The notes under the pieces were generated by a model. The model made no database searches. It was not told the DNA's origin and was given only the letters and a program-made list of their open reading frames with translations. The position numbers and the translations under genes were made by a program. Below are positions 3,172-64,000 of a stretch of DNA of 64,000 bases, one piece after another (the first letter of the stretch is position 1; each line of letters opens with the position of its first letter). Location of the stretch: contig NW_002060952.1 of assembly GCF_000150275.1 (NCBI RefSeq), forward strand, positions 766,482 through 830,481, read 5' to 3'. This DNA is from Trichoplax adhaerens. Lineage: Eukaryota > Animalia > Placozoa.

Positions 3172-4407
3172 ATGGAAGATAATTTTTCATTAGTTTATAA
3201 TTATGGTAATCTGACAGACGATCCACTATCTAATACTCAAATTATTATCTGTTCAATTATATTAACACTAGCAACGTTACTATCGTTAATTGGCAACAGC
3301 TTGGTGATTACAGTTATTATTCGTAATCGTCCACTTCATACTAATGCTGGTATGCTTATGGCTAATTTGGCAGTGGCCGATTTTTTAGTTGGTTTAGTTA
3401 TCATGTTTCCTACCCTAATTGCATTTATATGCCAAAAAGATATTTACCCTCGGATTGCCTGTGTTGCTCAAGGATCAGCAATTACAGTTTTAGTTGGTGC
3501 TTCGACAGTGACTATATTAGCAATTACTGCTGATCGTTTTATCTCCATTTTTCTATCCTTGCGTTATAATTCAATAGTAACAACAGCTGTCATTATTGGT
3601 ACTATTGCTTTCTCATGGCTATTTGCTACCGTGGCATCTACTATTCCATTGCTTGGTTTACAGAAATATGGCCTCGGTCGTTATGAATTTCTTCATGGAA
3701 TGTCCTATTGTTGGTTAGATCCATTGCAAGTTCAACAGAATAACGTTATAATCTCTATAATTGGTTTCTACGTTGTCTTAGAAATATTTATTATTACTAC
3801 ATGTTATTTAGTCATCTTTATTTATGCTCGCCAAAGTGTACGTAAAGTAATTCATTTAAGTGTTGGTGATTTACCTAAAGGGCGGCCTAAAATAACCAAA
3901 ACAACGAAAACTGTCATGATTGTGGTAGGTGTATTTATGTTTTGTTGGATGCCGTCATTGGTCAATAAGTTCCTAATTATATTCAAAGTTAAAACATTAT
4001 CCTTATCAGTTCGATTAATCTTCACATGGCTAACATTTTTCAATTCGGCTGCAAATCCAATCATCTATAGTATATTTAATCGTAATTTTATTACTGGTGT
4101 ACGTAATTTGTTCAAGAAAAGTATGAGTGAAAGATCGATTATAGTGTCTATGTCGGAGCGGAGATCAAGATCATTTCGGCGCCGTTCTCTATCAATCACT
4201 AAATTTAGGAACTCGTTACTTCCAATGCATAGAAGTAATACTGTCCAAGATGTTCGCTTTCCATCTTGCAATCAAAGTTTACAAGTTCCTAAGATTGTTA
4301 TTGCCAAAAGTAAATCTACTGAAGCTCTTTTTAAGCGCCGACGTGATAAAATTGTTATTCATGCTACATTAAATGAAGTTCCCATCGAGATTGAAGATGT
4401 TGCTTAG
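3172..4407 (+). CDS. Intronless rhodopsin-class (class A) orphan GPCR, 411 aa
   Basis: Seven hydrophobic helices with GN (TM1), NLAVAD (TM2), C3.25, DRF, W4.50, CWMP (TM6), NSAANPIIY (TM7); long Ser/Arg-rich C-tail. No Asp at 3.32 and no Lys at 7.43. Confidence 0.95.
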   Translation: MEDNFSLVYNYGNLTDDPLSNTQIIICSIILTLATLLSLIGNSLVITVIIRNRPLHTNAGMLMANLAVADFLVGLVIMFPTLIAFICQKDIYPRIACVAQGSAITVLVGASTVTILAITADRFISIFLSLRYNSIVTTAVIIGTIAFSWLFATVASTIPLLGLQKYGLGRYEFLHGMSYCWLDPLQVQQNNVIISIIGFYVVLEIFIITTCYLVIFIYARQSVRKVIHLSVGDLPKGRPKITKTTKTVMIVVGVFMFCWMPSLVNKFLIIFKVKTLSLSVRLIFTWLTFFNSAANPIIYSIFNRNFITGVRNLFKKSMSERSIIVSMSERRSRSFRRRSLSITKFRNSLLPMHRSNTVQDVRFPSCNQSLQVPKIVIAKSKSTEALFKRRRDKIVIHATLNEVPIEIEDVA

Positions 4408-7400
4408 AAATACTATTTGGTCTGATCTGATACTTTCAAGTTCAACATGTAAATAAGATAATAGTAAATAGATTACTATCAATGATTTTAATTTTAAAGA
4501 AGGGCCTTAAAAAATATTAAGATGAAACTTTATGTAAGAATTTTCCCAGCTACTTCTTTGCTGTAATTTATCTTTAATTCTATCCTCGTATTTTATATGT
4601 CTCCATCTTTTGTGATTGATCTACTGTATTCGGACGGGAAATAAAAGATGAGCATGAAGATGCTTATTTCGCAATTTTTACGACCTAATCTTGATAAAAC
4701 AGTAGATGTAGTCAATAAGAAGCACTAAAAATCTAGACTATGAGGTCTCAAGTTGATATTGACTACCGTGTTGGCGATAGCAGACTTTATCTTTAGTTCT
4801 TATTCTAGATAAATTTGTTGTCATTTCAATATGTCTAACAAATTTTTGCAATTTCAACTTCAAAAATGCCTTTCCCAGAGATAGTAACTGATATCATAAT
4901 GTATTTAAAAATAATTCATGATAATTTGGTAAGAAACAGCACCGTATGCATGATCAATTATGATGGATTCTTTGCTGCTACATTATTCTACACTCTATGT
5001 GACCATTATACTCGTATACTCTATCAGTAGCAGGAATAGATGGTATATGAGTATTTTACTGATTTATATTCAAATAAACGACTCTAAAACTGATCAACAA
5101 TCCATGGTTAGAATTGAAATAACGCTTTACTCTAGCGTAATTTGAATAAACCAACTGTTTCTATGATAAAAGTGAATAATTTTACTTCAATGTTCTATAT
5201 ATACTATTGCAACCATTCAGCTAATCAGCTCCTAAGAAATTGGGATTTTGATCCAAACTAGAGCAATCTTGAAACCTTGTTGTTTATTTTCTACCAGATT
5301 GATTTTACCAATTTACACATACCATTGAAGAGGAATTTCAAGGCAATTTCTAAGCTTGATTGCATGATGTGTTATTTAGATAGGTGGAATAAATTACTCA
5401 ACGAGTCAAGTTCGATTTACTCTATATACGTATCACTTATATGCCATTAAGGGTGGAACTAATGGAAGTATCCTAGTTGAACCCCATCATTTCTATACAT
5501 AATTGACCATGCTCTAGTTGACCATGCTATGCTAGACTAAAAAACCTTTAATTTGCATTTAGAACGAATAGAATGCTTGGCATAGCTAAATAGTCGCCCA
5601 TCTCATTAGTACGTGTTGGTAGACAGGAAATGGGATTCTTAATTCCATGTATTTCGATATAATATTTACTGTGAGACATAGTGTTAAGAAAGTGTTAAGA
5701 GGAAATTTTAGAATTAGATACGTCATGAGCTATTATCGTAACGAATTGGAGATCCATTCGAGCAAGATTCTAATTACAAATTGATTCTGCTTGATAATGC
5801 CGATACCCTTCAGTCGAGCAATTATAGTTAGCAGCGTAATTCAATTTCATTTTTTAATGGACATGCTATATATTACTGCTATTGAATATTTCTGTTGTTG
5901 AACTATTTTTGAACGAGAAATCCTAGCTGTAACATTGCTCTATTTTAATCATGGAATGTAGAGAATCTTGATTGCACAGATTCTAATCTCGATGGAATAG
6001 CATCATTCTTAAATACTATAGTGAAGGTAAAATTTATTATTAATTATTTGGTTAATGACAAAAATATCGTATAATCGCTTATTCATGCATATCCTTAAAC
6101 AATTTTCAGTTTTTAATCAGACTTTGTTACCATTGAAGGCTAATTAATGGAAAAATGTTGTGATTCGTTATGATCTACTAAATATTTCGTGGAACTGTGT
6201 GTATTTGGCTTTTATTAAACTAAGATCGTCTTTCTAACCAAGTTTCAAAGTGGAAGTTATTCAATGTGATAAATCTCAGTGAACAATAATTCAATCGTGA
6301 TTAAGAGCCACTCTGTTAGTGATAGGCTTTGTCCATTTGTCTAATAGGATCCAAAAAAATATTGCTGTCTGTTTGACGACACAGTGGATGCATTGAAAGC
6401 TAAATGAATAGTGGAATGATTTACGTCAAAGCCAAATGAAATTATAGTTACAGATTCAAATTCGTTATAGAAAAGATAGCTTTTTATTATCCTAGGACTA
6501 TCGTTTTTCTTGTCTTCGTGAACAAAATGGATAATAGCTACGGTTGTTTGTCATGGCCAGTGCATTATTTGGCGTAGTTTTCTTGATTCTTATTTAAAGG
6601 GCTACACTAATATCCAGGATGAAAAAATAATGTTTTTAAATATAAAAAATCAATAAGAAAGTTTGTTCTTTGATCATGTATCATAGACTATTTTAATTTA
6701 GCTAATACTGTCCCATCAAGGCATTTTGTGGATAAGGCTGTAATAAAAATTGATTGCTAAACAAATAGAATGGACGACATCATTTTCAATCCATGCTATT
6801 ATCATAGACATCACATCCTTTCTCTTTAGTAAGAAATTTTTTATTTTATTTACTTATATTATTCTTTTACCTAGGGTCTAATTGATTTATAAATCAATTA
6901 CTTCAGCTAAATGAGAAATTCATAGGAGAAAGTTAAAATGATCACGCTTGGACTAGAACCCTTGACTTTTATTATTCTAATAACACAGATTGTATAATTT
7001 ATCTTCATAAGGGTATTGAAATAGTTCAATTGTATAATTATTTATAATTCAATATTGTATTTATTCACAATTAATTGTATTCAATCAATTTTTGAGGAGG
7101 CTACAGCCTGAAAAAGTAAATTTCAATGTGGAATAGTCAAGAATACCATAGTATGATTAAAGTAATGTATAGGGACGCTTTTCAATTTTCAAAAGTCTAT
7201 ATTCCTGTTCTCCTTTTGATGGGCTATTCGCAGACGTAAGATAGACAACACATTATTATTTTTTAATCCGTGGATTTTTCTTTCTGTCAAGATCAATTTA
7301 TTCCCTCGATATATTATCCCTTTCTCAGCATGATTTCTCACACGCCTATAAAGACAAACTATTTGCTTTTCTTGAGCTAGCAAGTACTGAATTGATGAAC

Positions 7401-17168: not shown

Positions 17169-18221
17169 TTATAAATGAGGTGAATATGGAAAACGCGATT
17201 TAGATTTTGAGGAACGTTGAGGAGTAGCGCCTACCGATATTCTCATCACTGTCGCTCTTTGTCTTCGATGATAACGATTTAGATCATGAACGAATGCTTG
17301 GATACTGCCTCGATAGGATTTATTAGCTAAACTATAAATAATTGGATTAGCTGCTGAATTGGTGAAAACTAAGGCTAAGCCTAGTTTTTCAAATCGATGG
17401 TTTTGGCTACTTTTTCCATTGATTAATCCATTTAAAATCATAACAATCGAGGGTAAATTACAGCATAAGAATGTACCAACGATAACCATAGTGGTTTTAG
17501 TCGTTTTAAATGACATTTTATCTCTTAAATTAAGTCGTCTAATAAGATGAATTCGCCTTCTGTTGCGCATTGCTTCACGATAAATCAAGACATAGGAAAT
17601 AAAAACTAATAATAAGCAAATTGATGTCGATGTGTAAGTTATTGCTAAATAGATACCGTTATTGACTTTCAAATTAACGTCAATCCAGCAGATAAACAAA
17701 TAATCTACATATTGGTAGGTACCTAATCCAAGATGTTGTAAATTGAATAACGGTACAGCAGACATTAATAAGGACATAATCCATGTAGCGGTGATCGCAA
17801 TAACCGTTCGATTTGTTGTAACATAGCGCGGGTATTTTAATGGTTTTAGAACCGATATTAAACGATCTACAGAAATGCATACCACGGTTAAGATAGAAGC
17901 CTGTGTACATACATTAGTAATATAGGCGGAAATAGAGCAAAAGGGCTTAAAAAAAATTTGATGACCAAGAAGAATAGAAATTGCAAATGGCGGAATAGTA
18001 AATGCACCGACAATAAAATCAGACATAGCTAAATTTGTAATAAGATAGTTAGCGTTGCTATTGAGAATCTTATAACGATAGGTTAAAATAAGAACAGCCA
18101 AATTACCTATAACAGCTGTAAAGCTAGCTATAACCATTAATACAGTAATAAAGATATCAAGATGATCATTTCGTGGCAAAGTTTCATTTGACATAGTAGA
18201 GCTATTGCGTAATGGTGACAT
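17169..18221 (-). CDS. Intronless rhodopsin-class orphan GPCR, 350 aa
   Basis: GN, NLAMSD, DRL, PLKY in ICL2, CCNLP in TM6 (W6.48 replaced by N), NSAANPIIY; N-terminal N-glycosylation sequons (NSS, NET). Confidence 0.95.
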   Translation of the reverse strand: MSPLRNSSTMSNETLPRNDHLDIFITVLMVIASFTAVIGNLAVLILTYRYKILNSNANYLITNLAMSDFIVGAFTIPPFAISILLGHQIFFKPFCSISAYITNVCTQASILTVVCISVDRLISVLKPLKYPRYVTTNRTVIAITATWIMSLLMSAVPLFNLQHLGLGTYQYVDYLFICWIDVNLKVNNGIYLAITYTSTSICLLLVFISYVLIYREAMRNRRRIHLIRRLNLRDKMSFKTTKTTMVIVGTFLCCNLPSIVMILNGLINGKSSQNHRFEKLGLALVFTNSAANPIIYSLANKSYRGSIQAFVHDLNRYHRRQRATVMRISVGATPQRSSKSKSRFPYSPHL

Positions 18222-27200: not shown

Positions 27201-27655
27201 CTGCATCAATCTCGAATTATTTGAAACACTATACACGGATTTCTATATTATTACACTGGTTATTAATATTGAAATGGCTTCTATGGAACTGGAATACAAT
27301 ATATAAAGGATAAAAATTTAGTATTTGGGACTTTAATGAAGAATTTTAACAAAGCTATTTCAACGCAAATAGCAAAGACATTATTATTGCATATTGGATT
27401 ATAGAGCCTCTTGAACCTATTAATCTCACCAACTACGGCTTGCTTTGTTTGATAAATCCAACATTGTCCACCATAAATATCACTTTACCATTTAGATATT
27501 ATTCTGAGTTTATTTATTAGATACATAATAAATATAGCCCTTTCTAAATACAGCTGCTATCATCACTACTAGATTGATGAAATCAATATTACTCTCCCAA
27601 TTTTAATATCATCAATTTAGAGTGACACTAACATTCTGACTATCATTGAGTGATC

Positions 27656-28627
27656 ATGGATAGGCTAGCTGAGAGTAAAGGCCTTTTTTTGAGCAATAAT
27701 ATTACAGCCGTGCACAGTAATTATGCTACTACAACGCTATTTACGGTGATGACGGCAATTATATTTGGAAGTACTGTGTTTGGTAATATTATGTCATTAT
27801 TTGTTATCTACAAAACATCATCTTTATGGGATAATTCCGGTATTTTATTAGGAAATATGGCAGTTGCTGATTTAATCGTAGGCCTCATTTGTATGCCGAC
27901 TGCTTTTATTTCAATGTGTATCCAGCGTAGTTACCTGGCTCCAATCTTATGTGTTATAACTGGTTATATTAACACTGTTGTTATCGGAACATCATTACAA
28001 ACGTTAGCTTTTATTTGTGTTGATCGATGTATTTCAGTTCTCAAGCCCTTACATTATCATATGTACGTTACTAATAATGTATTAAGGCTTATGCTAGTAA
28101 TATCTTGGGTTTTTCCATCTGTTGTTTCAATAATACCTCTACTAGGACTACAGCAATATGGTTTAGGCAAATACTGCTTTGTCAACTATTTATCGACGTG
28201 CTGGTTAGATGTAATTCAAGTCCAACAAAATAGAGTGTTTCTATTGATGATTTATTCATTAGTGGTAATTATTCTTACTTGCATTGTAATCTGTTGCGTA
28301 CTAATACTTCTAGTTATACATAAATTAAGAAATACGGTCGCCGATATCTGCACATCATCGATTCATGCTCGGGCAGTTTCTAAGTCAACTGTTACTCTTA
28401 TGTTGATTGTAGGAGTTTTCATCTTATGCTTAATGCCTGCTGTGGTTGTTACTTTTATTACTTGCTTTACTAACGTTCAATTCCATGTAACTATTTACCA
28501 AATGGCTATTTGCTTAACTTATTTGAACTCTGCTATCAATCCCATCTTATACGGATTTTCTAGTCAAGATTTTCGCAATAGTTACTATACATTATGGAAG
28601 AGACATTTTCGTTTATATCGCTTTTAA
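27656..28627 (+). CDS. Intronless rhodopsin-class orphan GPCR, ~323 aa
   Basis: First ATG is at 27656 (the ORF track starts at an upstream GTG). GN, NMAVAD, DRC, PLHY, CLMP (W6.48 replaced by L), NSAINPILY; very short C-tail. Confidence 0.93.
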   Translation: MDRLAESKGLFLSNNITAVHSNYATTTLFTVMTAIIFGSTVFGNIMSLFVIYKTSSLWDNSGILLGNMAVADLIVGLICMPTAFISMCIQRSYLAPILCVITGYINTVVIGTSLQTLAFICVDRCISVLKPLHYHMYVTNNVLRLMLVISWVFPSVVSIIPLLGLQQYGLGKYCFVNYLSTCWLDVIQVQQNRVFLLMIYSLVVIILTCIVICCVLILLVIHKLRNTVADICTSSIHARAVSKSTVTLMLIVGVFILCLMPAVVVTFITCFTNVQFHVTIYQMAICLTYLNSAINPILYGFSSQDFRNSYYTLWKRHFRLYRF

Positions 28628-35177: not shown

Positions 35178-36383
35178 ATGGATAATTTAAGTCATAATCA
35201 ACCTCAACTCTTGCATCAGTTAAGTATTGCACCTCACGTAATAATATCTTTGTGCTTACTATTAATCAGTATTGTAAGTTTAGTTGGAAATTTAACCTCA
35301 TTATATGTAATCCGTAAAATTCTATCATTTCATACTCAACAATGGTTTCTGATATCGGTGATAATTGTCATCAATATAATCCTTGGATTATCTATACTGC
35401 CGACAACTGTCATTGCGTTCATACTCAACTATAACATATTCTCTTCATCCACATGTACATTTTTAGGATTTCTTTCTGCGTTTACTAATTTGATTCAGGC
35501 CTTTATCGTTGCTTTGACGTTAGTCCATCAAATTGCTCACTTAAATCCGACGTATCTATGTATTCGACATCGTGGTTATAAAAAATTATCCAAACCTTAC
35601 TTAATTCTATGCACTATTCTGACCTTCTTTTTCGCCATGTTACCGTTACTCAACATGGCAACTATCGGACTAGGTGAATACAAGATGATTTCTTCGATAC
35701 AAAATTGTTGGATTGATATCGGTGGCCCTAATAATAGGATAGTCTCGATCATATTTATATCTTGCTTTTTCTTGCCATATCTATTCTGCCTGTTCTGGTT
35801 GCTCGATCTGATATTATTATCGTTATCCAAGACGATATCGGGTGTGCAGTATCAATATCCTAGTCAAAATGGTGGCAGTAACGTTATACTACGGACAATT
35901 TCAACATTAATCATTGCTTATTTAAGTCTCAATTTGCCCAATATCGTTAAAATATCGGTTGAAAGAATATCACCAGGGAGAATATCTTCAACATTACAAA
36001 TGTTATTCACTTGGTTAGGATTCTTTTTTACTACTATCACACCAATAATTATGGCTTGTAATCATTCCGAATTTACTCAAGTCTATGCTCGTCTAGGAAA
36101 ATTAATCCGATCTTCAACAAGCAACAATGTAGTCCATCCAAGTGGTCGCTCCACTCCTAGGAAAACTACCATTCCTATAATTAAAATTGATAAAGTGGAC
36201 AATAGTTTGTATCCTACAACAGAGGCAAAAAACATTTATAACATCAAAAAAAGCACTAATGAAGAGGCTAATCAGAAATATCTTTCTGTGGGCAAGTCAT
36301 TAAGTTGCAATAAGCCTTACATGCATAAATCCGATGATATCGAATCTAAGGCTTCAGCAACTGCACGAGTTAGCGCAGTCTAA
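35178..36383 (+). CDS. Intronless atypical class A GPCR with degenerate activation motifs, 401 aa
   Basis: Open 401-aa frame with 7TM pattern, TM1 GN, C3.25 and the ECL2 GLGxY...CWID motif shared with the three neighbouring GPCRs; DRY replaced by HQI, NPxxY by TPIIM. Confidence 0.88.
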   Translation: MDNLSHNQPQLLHQLSIAPHVIISLCLLLISIVSLVGNLTSLYVIRKILSFHTQQWFLISVIIVINIILGLSILPTTVIAFILNYNIFSSSTCTFLGFLSAFTNLIQAFIVALTLVHQIAHLNPTYLCIRHRGYKKLSKPYLILCTILTFFFAMLPLLNMATIGLGEYKMISSIQNCWIDIGGPNNRIVSIIFISCFFLPYLFCLFWLLDLILLSLSKTISGVQYQYPSQNGGSNVILRTISTLIIAYLSLNLPNIVKISVERISPGRISSTLQMLFTWLGFFFTTITPIIMACNHSEFTQVYARLGKLIRSSTSNNVVHPSGRSTPRKTTIPIIKIDKVDNSLYPTTEAKNIYNIKKSTNEEANQKYLSVGKSLSCNKPYMHKSDDIESKASATARVSAV

Positions 36384-58516: not shown

Positions 58517-59655
58517 ATCAAATCAAATCAGCACTTGCTGACTATTTAGTTAATATCGCACACATTAACTTGAAAGATGAGTAAATAAAGGCCTGTTTAC
58601 TGCTCAATTAATATGCGTTACAAGGTATCTTCAAAATAATAAAACAAGAACTACAGTTTCTTGTAAATTATTACATAAATAAGGTAGTTCGCCTTACAAC
58701 GACCAAATTGTAATCTTAAGCTAATTTGGTGCTGCATTTTCATATAATACACTGCAAAACTTACAAGGTGAATAAATCACGGGCACTATTAGTATTCAGT
58801 TGGATGATTACTCGGTTCTATTCAACTTAAATTTCATCACAGTTTATATTCTGATCTGCCATAACTATCGACTCTGCCTTACACAATCTCATCTTCCAGT
58901 AAAGCATGTCTATTTTTTCCAACAAATATTTTACACGCCTGCAGTAATTGGCTATGTAACCTGCTTTCGATATTGCATTTCCTTCCCTTATCAGACGGCC
59001 AATTTAATCAATCAGTACAATAAGCGCAATTTTTCATACTATACTTTATTACTCTCCGATGAAAGTTTACTGTATATCTCACGTCGTCACTGGGTATTTT
59101 TACGATATACTACGTTACAGTTATCAAAAATGAAAAACGTCAAAGCGATTGCATTAGTCAAAATGAAATGCTATAACAACATTGAATCTAAAACTTAACA
59201 TCAAACATTTACTACTTATTTCATTAAATAATTATTATCATATGCGTAGTCATAAAATCAAAATTTTCGAAATACAGACATCGTCTCTATTCATGCTATT
59301 TAATCTATTTTTAATTCATAATATCGTACGCATCTTTAGTTCATATTAATTAACTATTATAAATAACACCAGAATAGAAGATTAAAATGAAAGGCAACTC
59401 AGATATTATACTTAATAAGACTGATATTCCCTTTGCAGTACCGTTGCTTACTATCAGTTGTACTAAATTTGCTACTGTTGTATCATAAGCTAAGATCATA
59501 GAGTAAAATCAGCACTTATGTGTATTCATGTCTTCGTTGTAAAATTAGGTGCGTGCGAAGGCAAATACCCTCAGTTCCGAATTATATTATGGTTACGTTG
59601 CACAACTTCAGGATTAATGAGATTACAAATAATTTGTGGAAGGCTTCGATTGAAA

Positions 59656-62600
59656 TTATTTCTTGACGCTAAGCCAATCCAATACATACGGAGCAAAATA
59701 GGTAATGATAATATCGGCACCTATATGTCAGTTATCAAGTTATCATAAATTTAATAGATAGTAACTAGACCTCATATTTTATAAATATCTTAACTATTTT
59801 AAAATAAATTAAACTTTATTAGTAATCATTAAAGTAACGATAGAACAACCTGCTCTTCGTAAGCCTGTCATAACTTCTAAAACGCCATCATCTAAATTGT
59901 AAAGGCCTTCTTCAGCACCTTTTAATAGCATCGCGTATTCACCTGAGACCTTATGTATTTCAAATAACAAGACATTAATTATACCCCATAGATTAACTAG
60001 AGTAATACACTTTCTTTTTAAATTTTAAATAATAAGATAGTATTAGCAGTTGCTTACCTGATACACAGCTAGCGGTATATCCGGAAACTGCCGTATAATT
60101 AGGACAATGATCGAAATTATTAAAAGATTGTATGCGTGCATGTGTAATTCATAAATTTAATGTTAATGTACTGATTATATTGAGATCGTAACGTACATTG
60201 CTAGATATAAATGCTTATATTAAGAAGATCTTTGCCTTAACAATTGACAAATATCCGATTAGTTACCATTGTTTTGGCATCGCGTAGAATATCTGTGTAG
60301 GCAAAGCTAGGTTTCACCATGAGCATATCTGCCCCTTCATCTATATCTCGTTTCTAGTTAAAGCGAAACTAATTTAGTTATGGGATATCATCGCGACGAT
60401 TAAATATAAGGTTATATTCGCAATTGAGCAAATAATACTTGGGAGAAGAATTTGTATGACCTACCAAGGCACGATGTGCTATCCCACTTGAAGCTGGTGG
60501 TAAGTGATACATTTTCTTGTCCTGCTTTGGTAAGCAACTCTTAGTTGCCTCCCTAGAGTTTGAATAACACATTACTATAGTAGAAGATTATTAAAGCTAG
60601 ATGTAAGCTACATTAAGAGCTTTATTGATACTTTATGAAATGGCAAAGTTATAAATTATCAAGATTTATTACTGGGAATATTAATATTACATTAACACGA
60701 TATAAAACTGAATATGAGAAATGTGACATTAATAATTCAGGTACTGTTCTCTTTTAATTAGATGTTAATCATTTGATATTTACAGGAAGGGGCCATAAAA
60801 GAATGATCTAAATTTTGCGGAGTAGCTAAGGACAGGAATCTATAAAAATAAATTTCACTCTTCATTTACAAGATTGAAATAAGTTGATGCTTACTTTGCT
60901 TAAATGAAAGATGATACGTTTAAGATAAGAAAATCTTGATATGTTGTTATCATCATCAGATATTTCGAATATTAATTAAAATTATGCTATTACAGCTTAC
61001 ATTTTTACCGATATCCTCTATGTTGTCGCCGTTAAATTTAAAGATAATTGAAGTAAATTTATGTTTCACTAGAGTAGATTCTTGATTAATGACCTCGTTA
61101 CTGGCATAACTATCGTAGTAGGATAAACAAATCAATTTATGCAAACCTTGTTGCCAAAACCGTTCTCCTTCAAAGCTGATTTAATTGCAGCAACTCTTCC
61201 ATCCATCATGGAAGATGGAGCAATGACATCGCAACCTAATAATGATAGTACATTTTATCTTTTGATTGGTACTTTATGAAAAATTTGCACGTTATGCAAC
61301 GTTAAAAGATAGAAATGCTTTTACTTTAGCGTTATAACGCCTAGTATATCGAATTTTGAATATTTTGCAGCACTTACAAATAGTATCACATTGTTATAGA
61401 ATTACGCTATACTGTGATATACTATATTCATTGTAATCGATCATAGATAACATGAAAGATCGAAATTATATCTCAACGAGATGATTAAAATTTCCGGGTT
61501 AGATGAAATAACGATAGAGTGTTTATTTCCGTATTGATATGCACTCAGTTTTCTACCTGCTTTCGCAAAATTAACAGAAATTTCAGCAAGTCTTTTTACT
61601 GAAGCATCTATGTCGATATCGCCATTGTCACAGCAAATACCTACAGCAAAAGCGTTTATAACAGAATTAGAGATGTACTATTAACAATTGCACAATGCTT
61701 TTGATCATTATTAAGAATAGGCAATGTACATACTATAAGATTATTTTATTATGATTTTACTATAAGCTATTTTACTGATTGTTTAAAAAACAGAAATTTA
61801 TAGTATAATCGATTACATCGGAATCTAAACTATTAGGGATCCAAGAATACACTAAGATTATACAATTTATACTTTTGAAATATTAATTCGAATCTAGTTG
61901 GCATGATATGCTAATACATTCTAAAAATGACTTTCAATTAAGATATCATTATAGCCCCTGTTATTTAAATATTATACAGAGTATGAAGCATTTGTAAATG
62001 TAACTTGTTGAAACACGTAGATATACTCTGTTTCATGATTACTGTAATAAAATGAGATATTTAACCTGTATAAACTTTCAAAGCGGTAAATCAATGTGAA
62101 AAAGCCACCTAACCGTATTTTACTGAGAGAGCATTGACTAACTATTACGTTTCATATTGGAGAGTATAAATTAATCCTTCAGTTTAAGAATTTCTATCCT
62201 AGCTACGACAGTATGATTTATCTTTGACAATGGTAAACAGTTAATAATTTTATAAAAATATTATGATATTATAATTCACTCGGGATTGCTAAACTGATTA
62301 AGATAGATAGCTAAATTTATAACTGTTTCCTCATTAATAAGTCATATCGGAGCGAAAAACGTAACAATAAACGAATAACTTGTTGCTGCCTTAATTTAAA
62401 CTAAAGCCTTTTCGTATACTTCACGGTCTCATTAATTAAATTAAACGATAAGATACTTGACATCTTTTAATAAAATTTAAATCCAAAGAAAATGTCAGTA
62501 GATAGTAACAGCCTTACTACAATTTAATTTATTAGGAGTCTAATGTTAACGGAGGATAAGAACTAACTATTAACAGAAAGACCTCACTTTATATACAACT

Positions 62601-64000
62601 GGTAAACATCACCTGCCATCTTACAAGTTACTACAGCTTCCTAATTAATGGTGTAGGAGCTTCTACTAACACCATAGTGTCTTATATTATCGTCTATCTT
62701 TCCAAATACGGTATAGATAACAACAACTGATTACATTGTTCATGTACTTTTAGTCGACAATACTATTATAATCATCATTTTAGATAAGATATCCCTACTA
62801 ATATAGGATCTCCTATATTAACGTTAACAGCTATTTAAATTAATTAATCTCGCTAGCGTTACACATCTTGATTACGTATTGATTACAGCGAACTGAATAA
62901 TGTAAAATAATCTATTAAGTTTTATCATAGTATTGCACCGTAGGTAAAGATAAGGTGCACTACTGCTTACAAAGAAAAAGAATAAATAAATAGATAAAAT
63001 TTACCTAATTGGTATATTTCCTACTAATCAATCATGGAATCTCTTTCTAAAATCATTGTGCTGTACAGTATAAAACCCCATGATATTTTTATTGTATCAT
63101 TATATATTGTCTGATGAATGTGATTTGAAGATATAGTTTACGTTATACTAAGATATCTTGTCAGAATTATGCCTTCTATCAATAGCTAGCACATCGTTAA
63201 GACTCATTCATGATTACAGACTATGGGGCGGCTAGGAAACTAAATAATAACATTTCCTTCTTTTGTGAACTGTTTGCACCCGCATATACGTGTCTTTGAA
63301 TGACAATTACATGACTGATCAGTTAGATTTACTTAAATAAACCCTGGGTGGCTATGGCAATTATAGGCGACAATGCTAGGCTGTATTAACAACCGATAAC
63401 TTACATGTTATAATGCGTAAAAATATATACAATAAAAGTATGTGTAAATATAAGTCTGCAAAGTGCATTAAATACTATTCAAATTAAAACGACTTTATAA
63501 ACGTAGAATATGAACATACTACAGACGATTGTTTAGTATACAACGCAAATTTATTTATACAATCAACAATGATACTTATGTTACTGAATGTCAAAGATTG
63601 CATGATTTAATAATGTCAAACAATCAATTTTGAGTAGTGCAGCCTTACCACAATGTCCAGTACTTGTATAACTACAAATGCAAACGTCCGCAATGATGAG
63701 AATATTAGGAAAGGCACTTCGTAGTTTACGAATAGCTTGCATTGCTGGGGCATTTTCCGAGTCAGCATTTGAACCACGAACATCCTGTATCATTCCAAAC
63801 GAAAAGACTGATCAAAATTATAGCTATTTGGTTGTATAATATCCCTTAGATTTCTTGGCGCAGGGAAAACTGTTACAATTTGTGCGCGATCAAGCACATG
63901 TTAAAGATAGAAATAAAGCTTGGGCATTACGATGCTGAACTAGGTGGGAGTTACCTTGGATAGGTTTTGTAAAACGCCGAAGATTAACACTGATGTTAAA
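59656..64000 (-). CDS. ALAD: Delta-aminolevulinic acid dehydratase / porphobilinogen synthase-like protein, 3' portion (5' end outside window), divergent active site
   Basis: Exons at about >64000-63955 (SVLIFGV), 63784-63649 ([14 protein letters not shown]), 61640-61557, 61235-61147 ([10 protein letters not shown]), 60839-60784 (SYSAKF..FYGPF), 60552-60462, 60354-60268 ([10 protein letters not shown]), 60087-60058, 59949-59850 (VSGEYAM), 59720-59656 (GADIIITYF). Confidence 0.93.

Follow-up and report, generated by a model that had tools for sequence, protein, structure and literature searches.

An expressed porphobilinogen synthase paralogue with a changed A-side substrate clamp in Trichoplax adhaerens

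The placozoan Trichoplax adhaerens has two genes for ALAD (delta-aminolevulinic acid dehydratase), also named porphobilinogen synthase (PBGS), and one of them is altered at the site where the second substrate molecule would be held. This gene, TRIADDRAFT_50678, lies on the minus strand at the end of a 64,000-nucleotide stretch of the genome (contig NW_002060952.1, here C1405:766482-830481; hereafter the window), in an assembly (G000) of 105.6 Mb in 1414 contigs. Judged from the aligned protein, the unusual core of this copy is Leu209 together with His225, with Lys221 in an enzyme that has the three zinc cysteines (Cys3 type), and a rebuilt active-site lid. The window copy is transcribed, correctly spliced and under purifying selection. 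We put at about an even chance the reading that it is a still-catalytic paralogue whose A-side affinity or specificity has changed.

The public protein model of the gene (P0270; XP_002115384, EDV22229, UniProt B3S5A4) has 331 amino acids. It is identical to the exon model supported by RNA, with all 12 exon pieces matched in order and the split codons read as H, R, G, G, L and G. Its alignment to human ALAD (phmmer, 1e-116; 54% identity) is gapless, with residues 3-328 on 3-328, and human numbering therefore applies directly. Pfam family PF00490 was matched exon by exon in the genome and is annotated on P0270 as PF00490.28. With the NCBIfam PBGS equivalog NF006762, P0270 scored 337.4 bits against a cut-off of 297, and a canonical animal ALAD (P0030) scored 379.8; this profile score is blind to the three changed residues (209, 221 and 225). 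An AlphaFold2 model made with a 40-sequence alignment (mean predicted local distance difference test score, pLDDT, 90.1; predicted template modelling score 0.91) has the predicted TIM-barrel fold with an N-terminal arm, and its best Foldseek matches are human ALAD 5HMS and 1E51 (TM 0.91). Confidence is lower only at the termini and in the lid (pLDDT 68-79 for residues 211-230), which is the mobile part of solved ALADs.

In the alignment to human ALAD, both Schiff-base lysines (K199 and K252), the Cys3 zinc site (C122, C124 and C132) with D120, and the P-side carboxylate ligands S279 and Y318 are present, as are S168, Y196, Y205, F208 and Y276. The octamer-interface residue R240, of the metazoan and fungal type, and the N-terminal arm are also present. 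The lysines, zinc site, D120, P-site ligands, R240 and arm are common to the window copy and the zinc-dependent eukaryotic PBGS (human 1E51/5HMS, yeast 1H7O). The window copy differs from those enzymes in R209L, R221K and Q225H, in the lid (A201R, P216L, F218K and G219Q) and in C119A, H129T, C223M and G254S; further changes relative to human ALAD are D169S, A212T, G229A and L258T. A preliminary description of this DNA had noted the intact lysines of the SYSAK and MVKP motifs, the zinc cysteine motif and the P-side Ser and Tyr, all of which the gapless alignment bears out. It had also noted R221K, Q225H, the divergent lid and the change of KPG to KPS (G254S), and these stand in the RNA-supported model and its alignment.

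The clamp of A-side carboxylate and lid that is typical of EC 4.2.1.24 consists of R209, R221 (Lys in enzymes of the Asp type) and Q225; in the window copy these positions are L209, K221 and H225. Gln225 is taken here to act at the A-side clamp, as in the yeast and Pseudomonas complexes. A literature search for a paper stating the role of Q225 or its equivalents found none. Arg209, Arg221 and zinc hold the A-site substrate of human ALAD, where the carboxylate on the P-side is bound by S279 and Y318 (PMC13465085). The carboxyl group of the substrate that determines Km bonds basic lid residues and thereby holds the lid closed, and Km is high when the lid is not secured (PMC7729013).

The rarity of these changes was assessed in two comparison sets. 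One comprised other collected homologues, mostly animal and some prokaryotic (231 scored at position 209, and 217 at 225 and 221). The other comprised 80 ALADs from metagenomes with 35-48% identity to P0270, read as microbial; the scan that used P0270 as query returned only such ALADs and no close relative. R209 was found in 230 of 231 homologues in the first set and Q225 and R221 each in 216 of 217, and in the second set R209 and Q225 were found in 80 of 80 and G219 in 76 of 80. Thus, the high conservation asserted in the preliminary description holds over about 300 homologues for R209 and Q225 and in the first set for R221, and the changes at these three positions, as seen in the alignment, are not chance variation. 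The invariance of R209 and Q225 in about 300 ALADs of all metal types argues that they are not easily replaced.

Position 221 tracks metal class. In the metagenome set, the 56 ALADs that have cysteines at both 122 and 132 all carry Arg there, and the 24 of the Ala/Asp/Asp type all carry Lys. Among the Cys3-type proteins of the first set, R221 is present in 214 of 217, Lys only in the two Trichoplax proteins and Val in P0134. We know of no earlier statement of this covariation in so sharp a form. Chlorobium PBGS (1W1Z), an Asp-type enzyme, also has Lys at 221. The preliminary description had allowed that Lys221 occurs in some bacterial enzymes, which is correct as far as it goes; in these sets it is confined to the Asp-type, zinc-independent enzymes and is found in no other sampled Cys3-type enzyme, so that the signal is sharper than was first described. 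The zinc-independent bacterial PBGS (Chlorobium, and the Ala/Asp/Asp metagenome class) share Lys221 with the window copy, but their zinc cysteines are replaced by Ala/Asp/Asp and they keep R209 and Q225; the window copy is the opposite on both counts.

A residue other than R209 and Q225 at these two positions was found in only one of the about 300 other ALADs, P0130, a protein of 334 amino acids that looks bacterial. P0130 keeps the Cys3 motif, with Asp at 209 and Arg at 225. It lacks both Schiff-base lysines (K199P and K252E), unlike the window copy, and its sequence marks it as probably a non-catalytic ALAD-like protein. The substitution D169S, listed in the preliminary description as part of the A-site signature, is present but does not belong in that signature. 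Position 169 is Ala in E. coli PBGS and Gly in Pyrobaculum PBGS, and in the 80 metagenome ALADs it is D in 57, A in 11, G in 8, N in 3 and C in 1 (23 of 80 not D). As a functional signal it was ruled out on these grounds.

The gene extends past the end of the window and was followed into a flanking stretch (L011, C1405:825500-835499; window coordinate = L011 coordinate + 59018). Of its 12 coding exons the window contains the final nine and a half; the other two and a half, with a 5′ non-coding exon, occupy L011 from 4937 to 5900 and beyond. Four public runs were compared over L011:450-5900. Spliced contigs were obtained from X8 (a declared RNA library, organism B, study P5) and X10 (organism A, study P6), and in these contigs from two studies all 12 introns are visible as joints, each GT..AG on the minus strand. 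One of these introns is in the 5′ leader and the other eleven interrupt the coding sequence. Run X1 spans the introns without joints, which is DNA-like behaviour. The coding sequence is 996 nt (331 codons) with an intact frame, and AG/GT is canonical at every coding intron.

The joint at window 60784|60552 (L011 1766|1534) reads TTC CT|G GAG in X8 and X10 alike, that is, Phe208-Leu209-Glu210, and the DNA-like run X1 shows no difference from the reference at the CT|G junction bases. The splice junctions placed by eye in the preliminary description, and its reading of the usual YGPFR motif as YGPFL through the split codon CT+G, are thus confirmed by RNA; the genome of Trichoplax sp. H2 and both public protein models also give Leu. 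At the acceptor of coding intron 7 (window 60552-60554, minus strand), the last two intron bases and the first exon base form AGG in the exon frame. A straight genomic translation there shows Arg before E210, by coincidence at the canonical place of R209, and both gene finders and readers could be misled by it. There is no AG dinucleotide upstream of the in-frame AGG and hence no usable canonical acceptor that would give Arg209; together with the CT|G joint in RNA, this rules out an alternative acceptor.

P0270 was found with a profile from an alignment (A1) of a carrier animal ALAD and the 12 exon pieces; MAFFT stacked the fragments, and a local simulation indicated that the profile is dominated by the window gene. 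In that search P0270 scored 158 bits, every canonical ALAD scored at most 71 bits and no match like the window copy fell between, which is weak evidence of absence elsewhere. A search with exon 4 of a library of 1.84 billion representatives, in which the paralogue is concealed within a 50% cluster, gave only canonical ALADs and vertebrate fragments (best identity 70%). The top 120 matches to a second alignment (A2, the carrier animal ALAD with three exon rows) were all canonical, and the stop-to-stop frame around exon 4 gave no candidate within the searched length range. The 90% cluster of P0270 has one other member, RDD46522 (P0346) of Trichoplax sp. H2, whose sole difference is M102V. The signature is therefore also present in that orthologue, which has L209, K221 and H225. 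Codon 102 (window 63742) is ATG (Met) in the reference and GTG (Val) in all four runs and in the H2 genome, so that the reference allele stands alone. Literature searches for this gene, its accessions and any placozoan ALAD found no relevant paper.

The PF00490 profile matches just two loci in the genome, of which the second, on C1413 (L010), is an intact canonical ALAD (copy B). The preliminary description had raised the possibility that the window gene is the only ALAD and that haem synthesis in this animal is unusual; the search for a second, canonical gene has refuted this, and an animal with a sole aberrant ALAD is excluded. The existence of the canonical copy also means that the window copy was freed to change function. 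The exon model of copy B was drawn from homology and splice signals, without RNA evidence, and the joined model was used for alignment, tree and the ratio of nonsynonymous to synonymous divergence (dN/dS). The 11 coding introns of copy B agree with those of the window gene in position and phase, and nine of the 12 coding exons are identical in length. At every examined site copy B is canonical (R209, as the split codon CG|G, R221, Q225, D169, G219 and G254) except that C223 is Arg. For the iron-sulphur form of the human enzyme, C119 and C223 have both been reported as important (PMC7725820). The window copy has Ala and Met at these positions, and at least C223 is not conserved in placozoans.

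The two copies are 52% identical, with dN of 0.43 and dS of 2.7 by the Nei and Gojobori method (NG86); dN/dS is about 0.16, on a saturated dS. This level of identity and the saturation of dS imply that the duplication is old. Identity to other animal ALADs is 48-60% for the window copy and 53-65% for copy B. In a 32-taxon IQ-TREE analysis (LG+G4), the window copy is placed with homoscleromorph sponges (ultrafast bootstrap 85) and copy B near the animal base, with low internal support; a tree with the two Trichoplax copies as a clade is not rejected (approximately unbiased test, p=0.375). On these sequences the old duplication may fall within the placozoan stem or precede it. The terminal branch is longer for the window copy than for copy B, at 0.78 vs 0.41 in the IQ-TREE analysis and 0.63 vs 0.46 with FastTree.

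The window copy has changed in 24 of 123 family-conserved columns vs 120 of 201 variable columns (p=9e-13). Copy B has changed in 12 conserved columns. Within the conserved columns, the changes of the window copy are concentrated in the lid (residues 200-233), with nine of 22 changed there vs 15 of 101 elsewhere (p=0.014); the corresponding figures for copy B are one of 22 and 11 of 101. In a simulation of unconstrained mutation with intron-like base composition, an open frame was kept in 6% of cases at 11% residue divergence, in 0.3% at 22% and in 0 of 4000 at 41%. Compared with Trichoplax sp. H2 (L012), the exons differ at four of 996 sites (three synonymous and one nonsynonymous) and the introns at 18 of 3950. 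The preliminary description had named a lack of expression with dN/dS near 1 as the mark of a decaying duplicate; the gene is expressed, and the ratio given above, with its saturated dS, is not near 1.

In the reading favoured here, the window gene would be an old duplicate of the canonical gene, and copy B would carry ordinary haem synthesis. With K199, K252, the Cys3 zinc site, D120, S279 and Y318 kept, binding of an aminoketone in each subsite would still be possible. L209, K221 and H225 stand in place of the three residues that normally hold the second molecule of aminolevulinic acid (ALA), the A-side one that determines Km, by its carboxylate and close the lid. The paralogue would then still be a Schiff-base and zinc condensing enzyme with a changed A-site, one that either takes ALA weakly, at a high Km, or favours an aminoketone of lower acidity. 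Since the Schiff-base and zinc apparatus is kept, the protein most likely still binds an aminoketone per subsite and catalyses a condensation, and since the clamp is changed, binding of the A-side substrate is most likely altered. A more specific form of this reading, which must be called doubtful, is a mixed-pyrrole synthase. In it ALA would occupy the P-site, which is intact, and would be condensed with a partner in the rebuilt, more hydrophobic A-site, an aminoketone such as aminoacetone that has no carboxylate or a different charge. The preliminary description had seen neofunctionalisation in a clustered subsite change of an intact, intron-rich gene. The cluster itself has held up, in a clamp that is changed and a gene that is expressed, constrained and enriched for changes in the lid; neofunctionalisation with a new specificity would be one of the readings compatible with the sequence, beside a compensated PBGS and a pseudo-enzyme.

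Several points weigh against a changed A-side specificity. R201 and K218 are new in the lid and K213 and K222 are retained, so that a carboxylate might be bound anew by what would then be an ordinary PBGS. Power is low in the comparison with H2 (one nonsynonymous difference vs about 3.5 expected, p about 0.1, which is consistent with constraint), and the orthologue comparison for L209, K221 and H225 spans the genus Trichoplax only. An ordinary PBGS isozyme is nevertheless considered unlikely. In such an enzyme R201, K218, K221, K222 and H225 would jointly hold the carboxylate of the A-side ALA, porphobilinogen would be formed with near-normal kinetics, and the cell types or conditions of use might differ from those of copy B. 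This reading would account for the intact catalytic core and the score above the equivalog cut-off. The net positive charge of the lid is not lost overall, because R201 and K218 are new, and the carboxylate site could thereby be compensated; P0135 combines R201 with a normal active site, and Lys221 works in Asp-type enzymes such as Chlorobium PBGS. However, an isozyme of this kind would have dispensed with R209 and Q225, which are invariant in ALADs of all metal types, would have an altered G219, P216 and F218 in the lid as well, and would use a Lys221 that no other sampled Cys3-type enzyme has. About equally improbable is a non-catalytic or regulatory paralogue, either a P-site sensor or buffer of ALA or a partner of copy B in mixed octamers or hexamers that tunes its activity. 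Residues for productive A-side binding and lid closure are lost, R240 at the octamer interface and the N-terminal arm are kept, C119 and C223, of the human iron-sulphur form (PMC7725820), are A and M, and P0130 offers the precedent of a clearly non-catalytic ALAD homologue. Such a role would not require the keeping of K199, K252, the three zinc cysteines, D120, S168, Y205, F208, Y276, S279 and Y318, yet all are kept, whereas P0130 lost both lysines.

Early decay of a duplicate that is still transcribed after selection has gone would fit the longer terminal branch and the 24 deviating conserved columns, twice the 12 of copy B. It is rated very improbable, as the 331-codon frame is intact and the splice sites of the coding introns are all canonical, with introns of this genome at about 71% A+T. 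Substitutions also strongly avoid conserved columns, dN/dS relative to copy B is about 0.16 (saturated dS), only one of the four exon differences from H2 is nonsynonymous, and spliced RNA was found in two studies. Virtually no credence is given to an artefact, that is, a wrong splice site or base-call error that conceals a true Arg209. The genomic frame through the intron 7 acceptor does give AGG before E210, but the spliced contigs of two runs have CT|G, X1 shows no difference at these bases, and Leu is also the residue in the H2 genome and in both public protein models. A still-catalytic paralogue with a changed A-side is thus the reading kept here. Its functional analogue may be the human F12L variant, a hexameric PBGS of low activity (1PV8), in which an unsecured lid leaves the A-side substrate loosely held and the Km high (PMC7729013). 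The lid residues of F12L are normal and its defect is in quaternary structure, whereas in the window copy the lid residues themselves are altered.

The exons of the gene, its 3′ untranslated region and the second copy are listed in the table.

Table. Exons of TRIADDRAFT_50678 and position of copy B; coordinates are those of the window unless L011 or L010 is named
Feature	Coordinates	Strand	Content	Basis
5′ non-coding exon	L011 5672 to at least 5900	-	Upstream in-frame stop, no in-frame ATG	RNA joints
ATG exon (coding exon 1)	L011 5583-5471	-		RNA joints
Coding exon 2	L011 5297-5247	-		RNA joints
Coding exon 3	L011 5033-4937 = window 64051-63955; in-window 3′ part 63955..64000	-		RNA joints
Coding exon 4	63649..63784	-	Residues 88-132 and first base of G133; zinc motif D120, C122, C124, C132 (D-V-C-I-C ... 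C); A119 for the usual Cys, T129 for the usual His	RNA joints, alignment
Coding exon 5	61557..61640	-	Residues 134-160	RNA joints
Coding exon 6	61147..61235	-	C162, S168, S169 (codon 61212-61210; D in most ALADs)	RNA joints, alignment
Coding exon 7	60784..60839	-	A-site Schiff-base K199, R201, Y205, F208; ends with CT of split codon 209	RNA joints
Coding exon 8	60465..60552	-	Opens with G of CTG = L209; active-site lid L216, K218, Q219, K221 (codon 60518-60516), K222, M223, H225 (codon 60506-60504)	
Coding exon 9	60267..60353	-	R240, P-site Schiff-base K252, S254	RNA joints, alignment
Coding exon 10	60058..60087	-	Y276	RNA joints, alignment
Coding exon 11	59850..59949	-	P-side carboxylate ligand S279	RNA joints, alignment
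Coding exon 12	59656..59720	-	P-side ligand Y318; stop codon 59658-59656	RNA joints
3′ untranslated region	59468..59655, at least	-	Runs on past the compared stretch	RNA contigs cover L011 450-700
Copy B (canonical ALAD)	G000:C1413, L010 2152-6636	-	337 aa, intact model	

Coding intron 4, of 2008 bp, contains a stretch (window 62562-62925, L011 3544-3907) in which the depth of X1 is 300-408 vs about 65-86 nearby (4-5 times), and contigs end loose at L011 3555, 3588 and 3804. The raised depth and the contig breaks suggest a repeated element within this intron. In Trichoplax sp. H2, the neighbours of the paralogue (L012, NOWV01000008.1:806104-823049) are a pseudouridine synthase gene upstream and DUF423 and BRAP2/RING genes downstream, and no other haem-pathway gene lies within 6 kb on either side. 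Elsewhere in the window, four single-exon open reading frames of 325-411 amino acids (3172-4407, 17169-18221, 27650-28627 and 35178-36383) look like paralogues of class A G protein-coupled receptors and form a local cluster.

As far as we know, PBGS has been treated as a single-function family, and across the roughly 300 sampled homologues there is little variation in its active-site residues. The window copy also exposes a limit of annotation transfer, since public databases name it delta-aminolevulinic acid dehydratase and it passes the equivalog cut-off though the defining subsite is not conserved. As an expressed and selectively maintained homologue that occurs in nature with all three clamp residues changed, it lends itself directly to testing the function of those positions. 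In this early-branching animal it could also represent new pyrrole chemistry or a regulatory subunit of ALAD. If the mixed-pyrrole reading were true, the paralogue would be the first ALAD-family protein to catalyse another reaction, and its product would be a pyrrole other than porphobilinogen.

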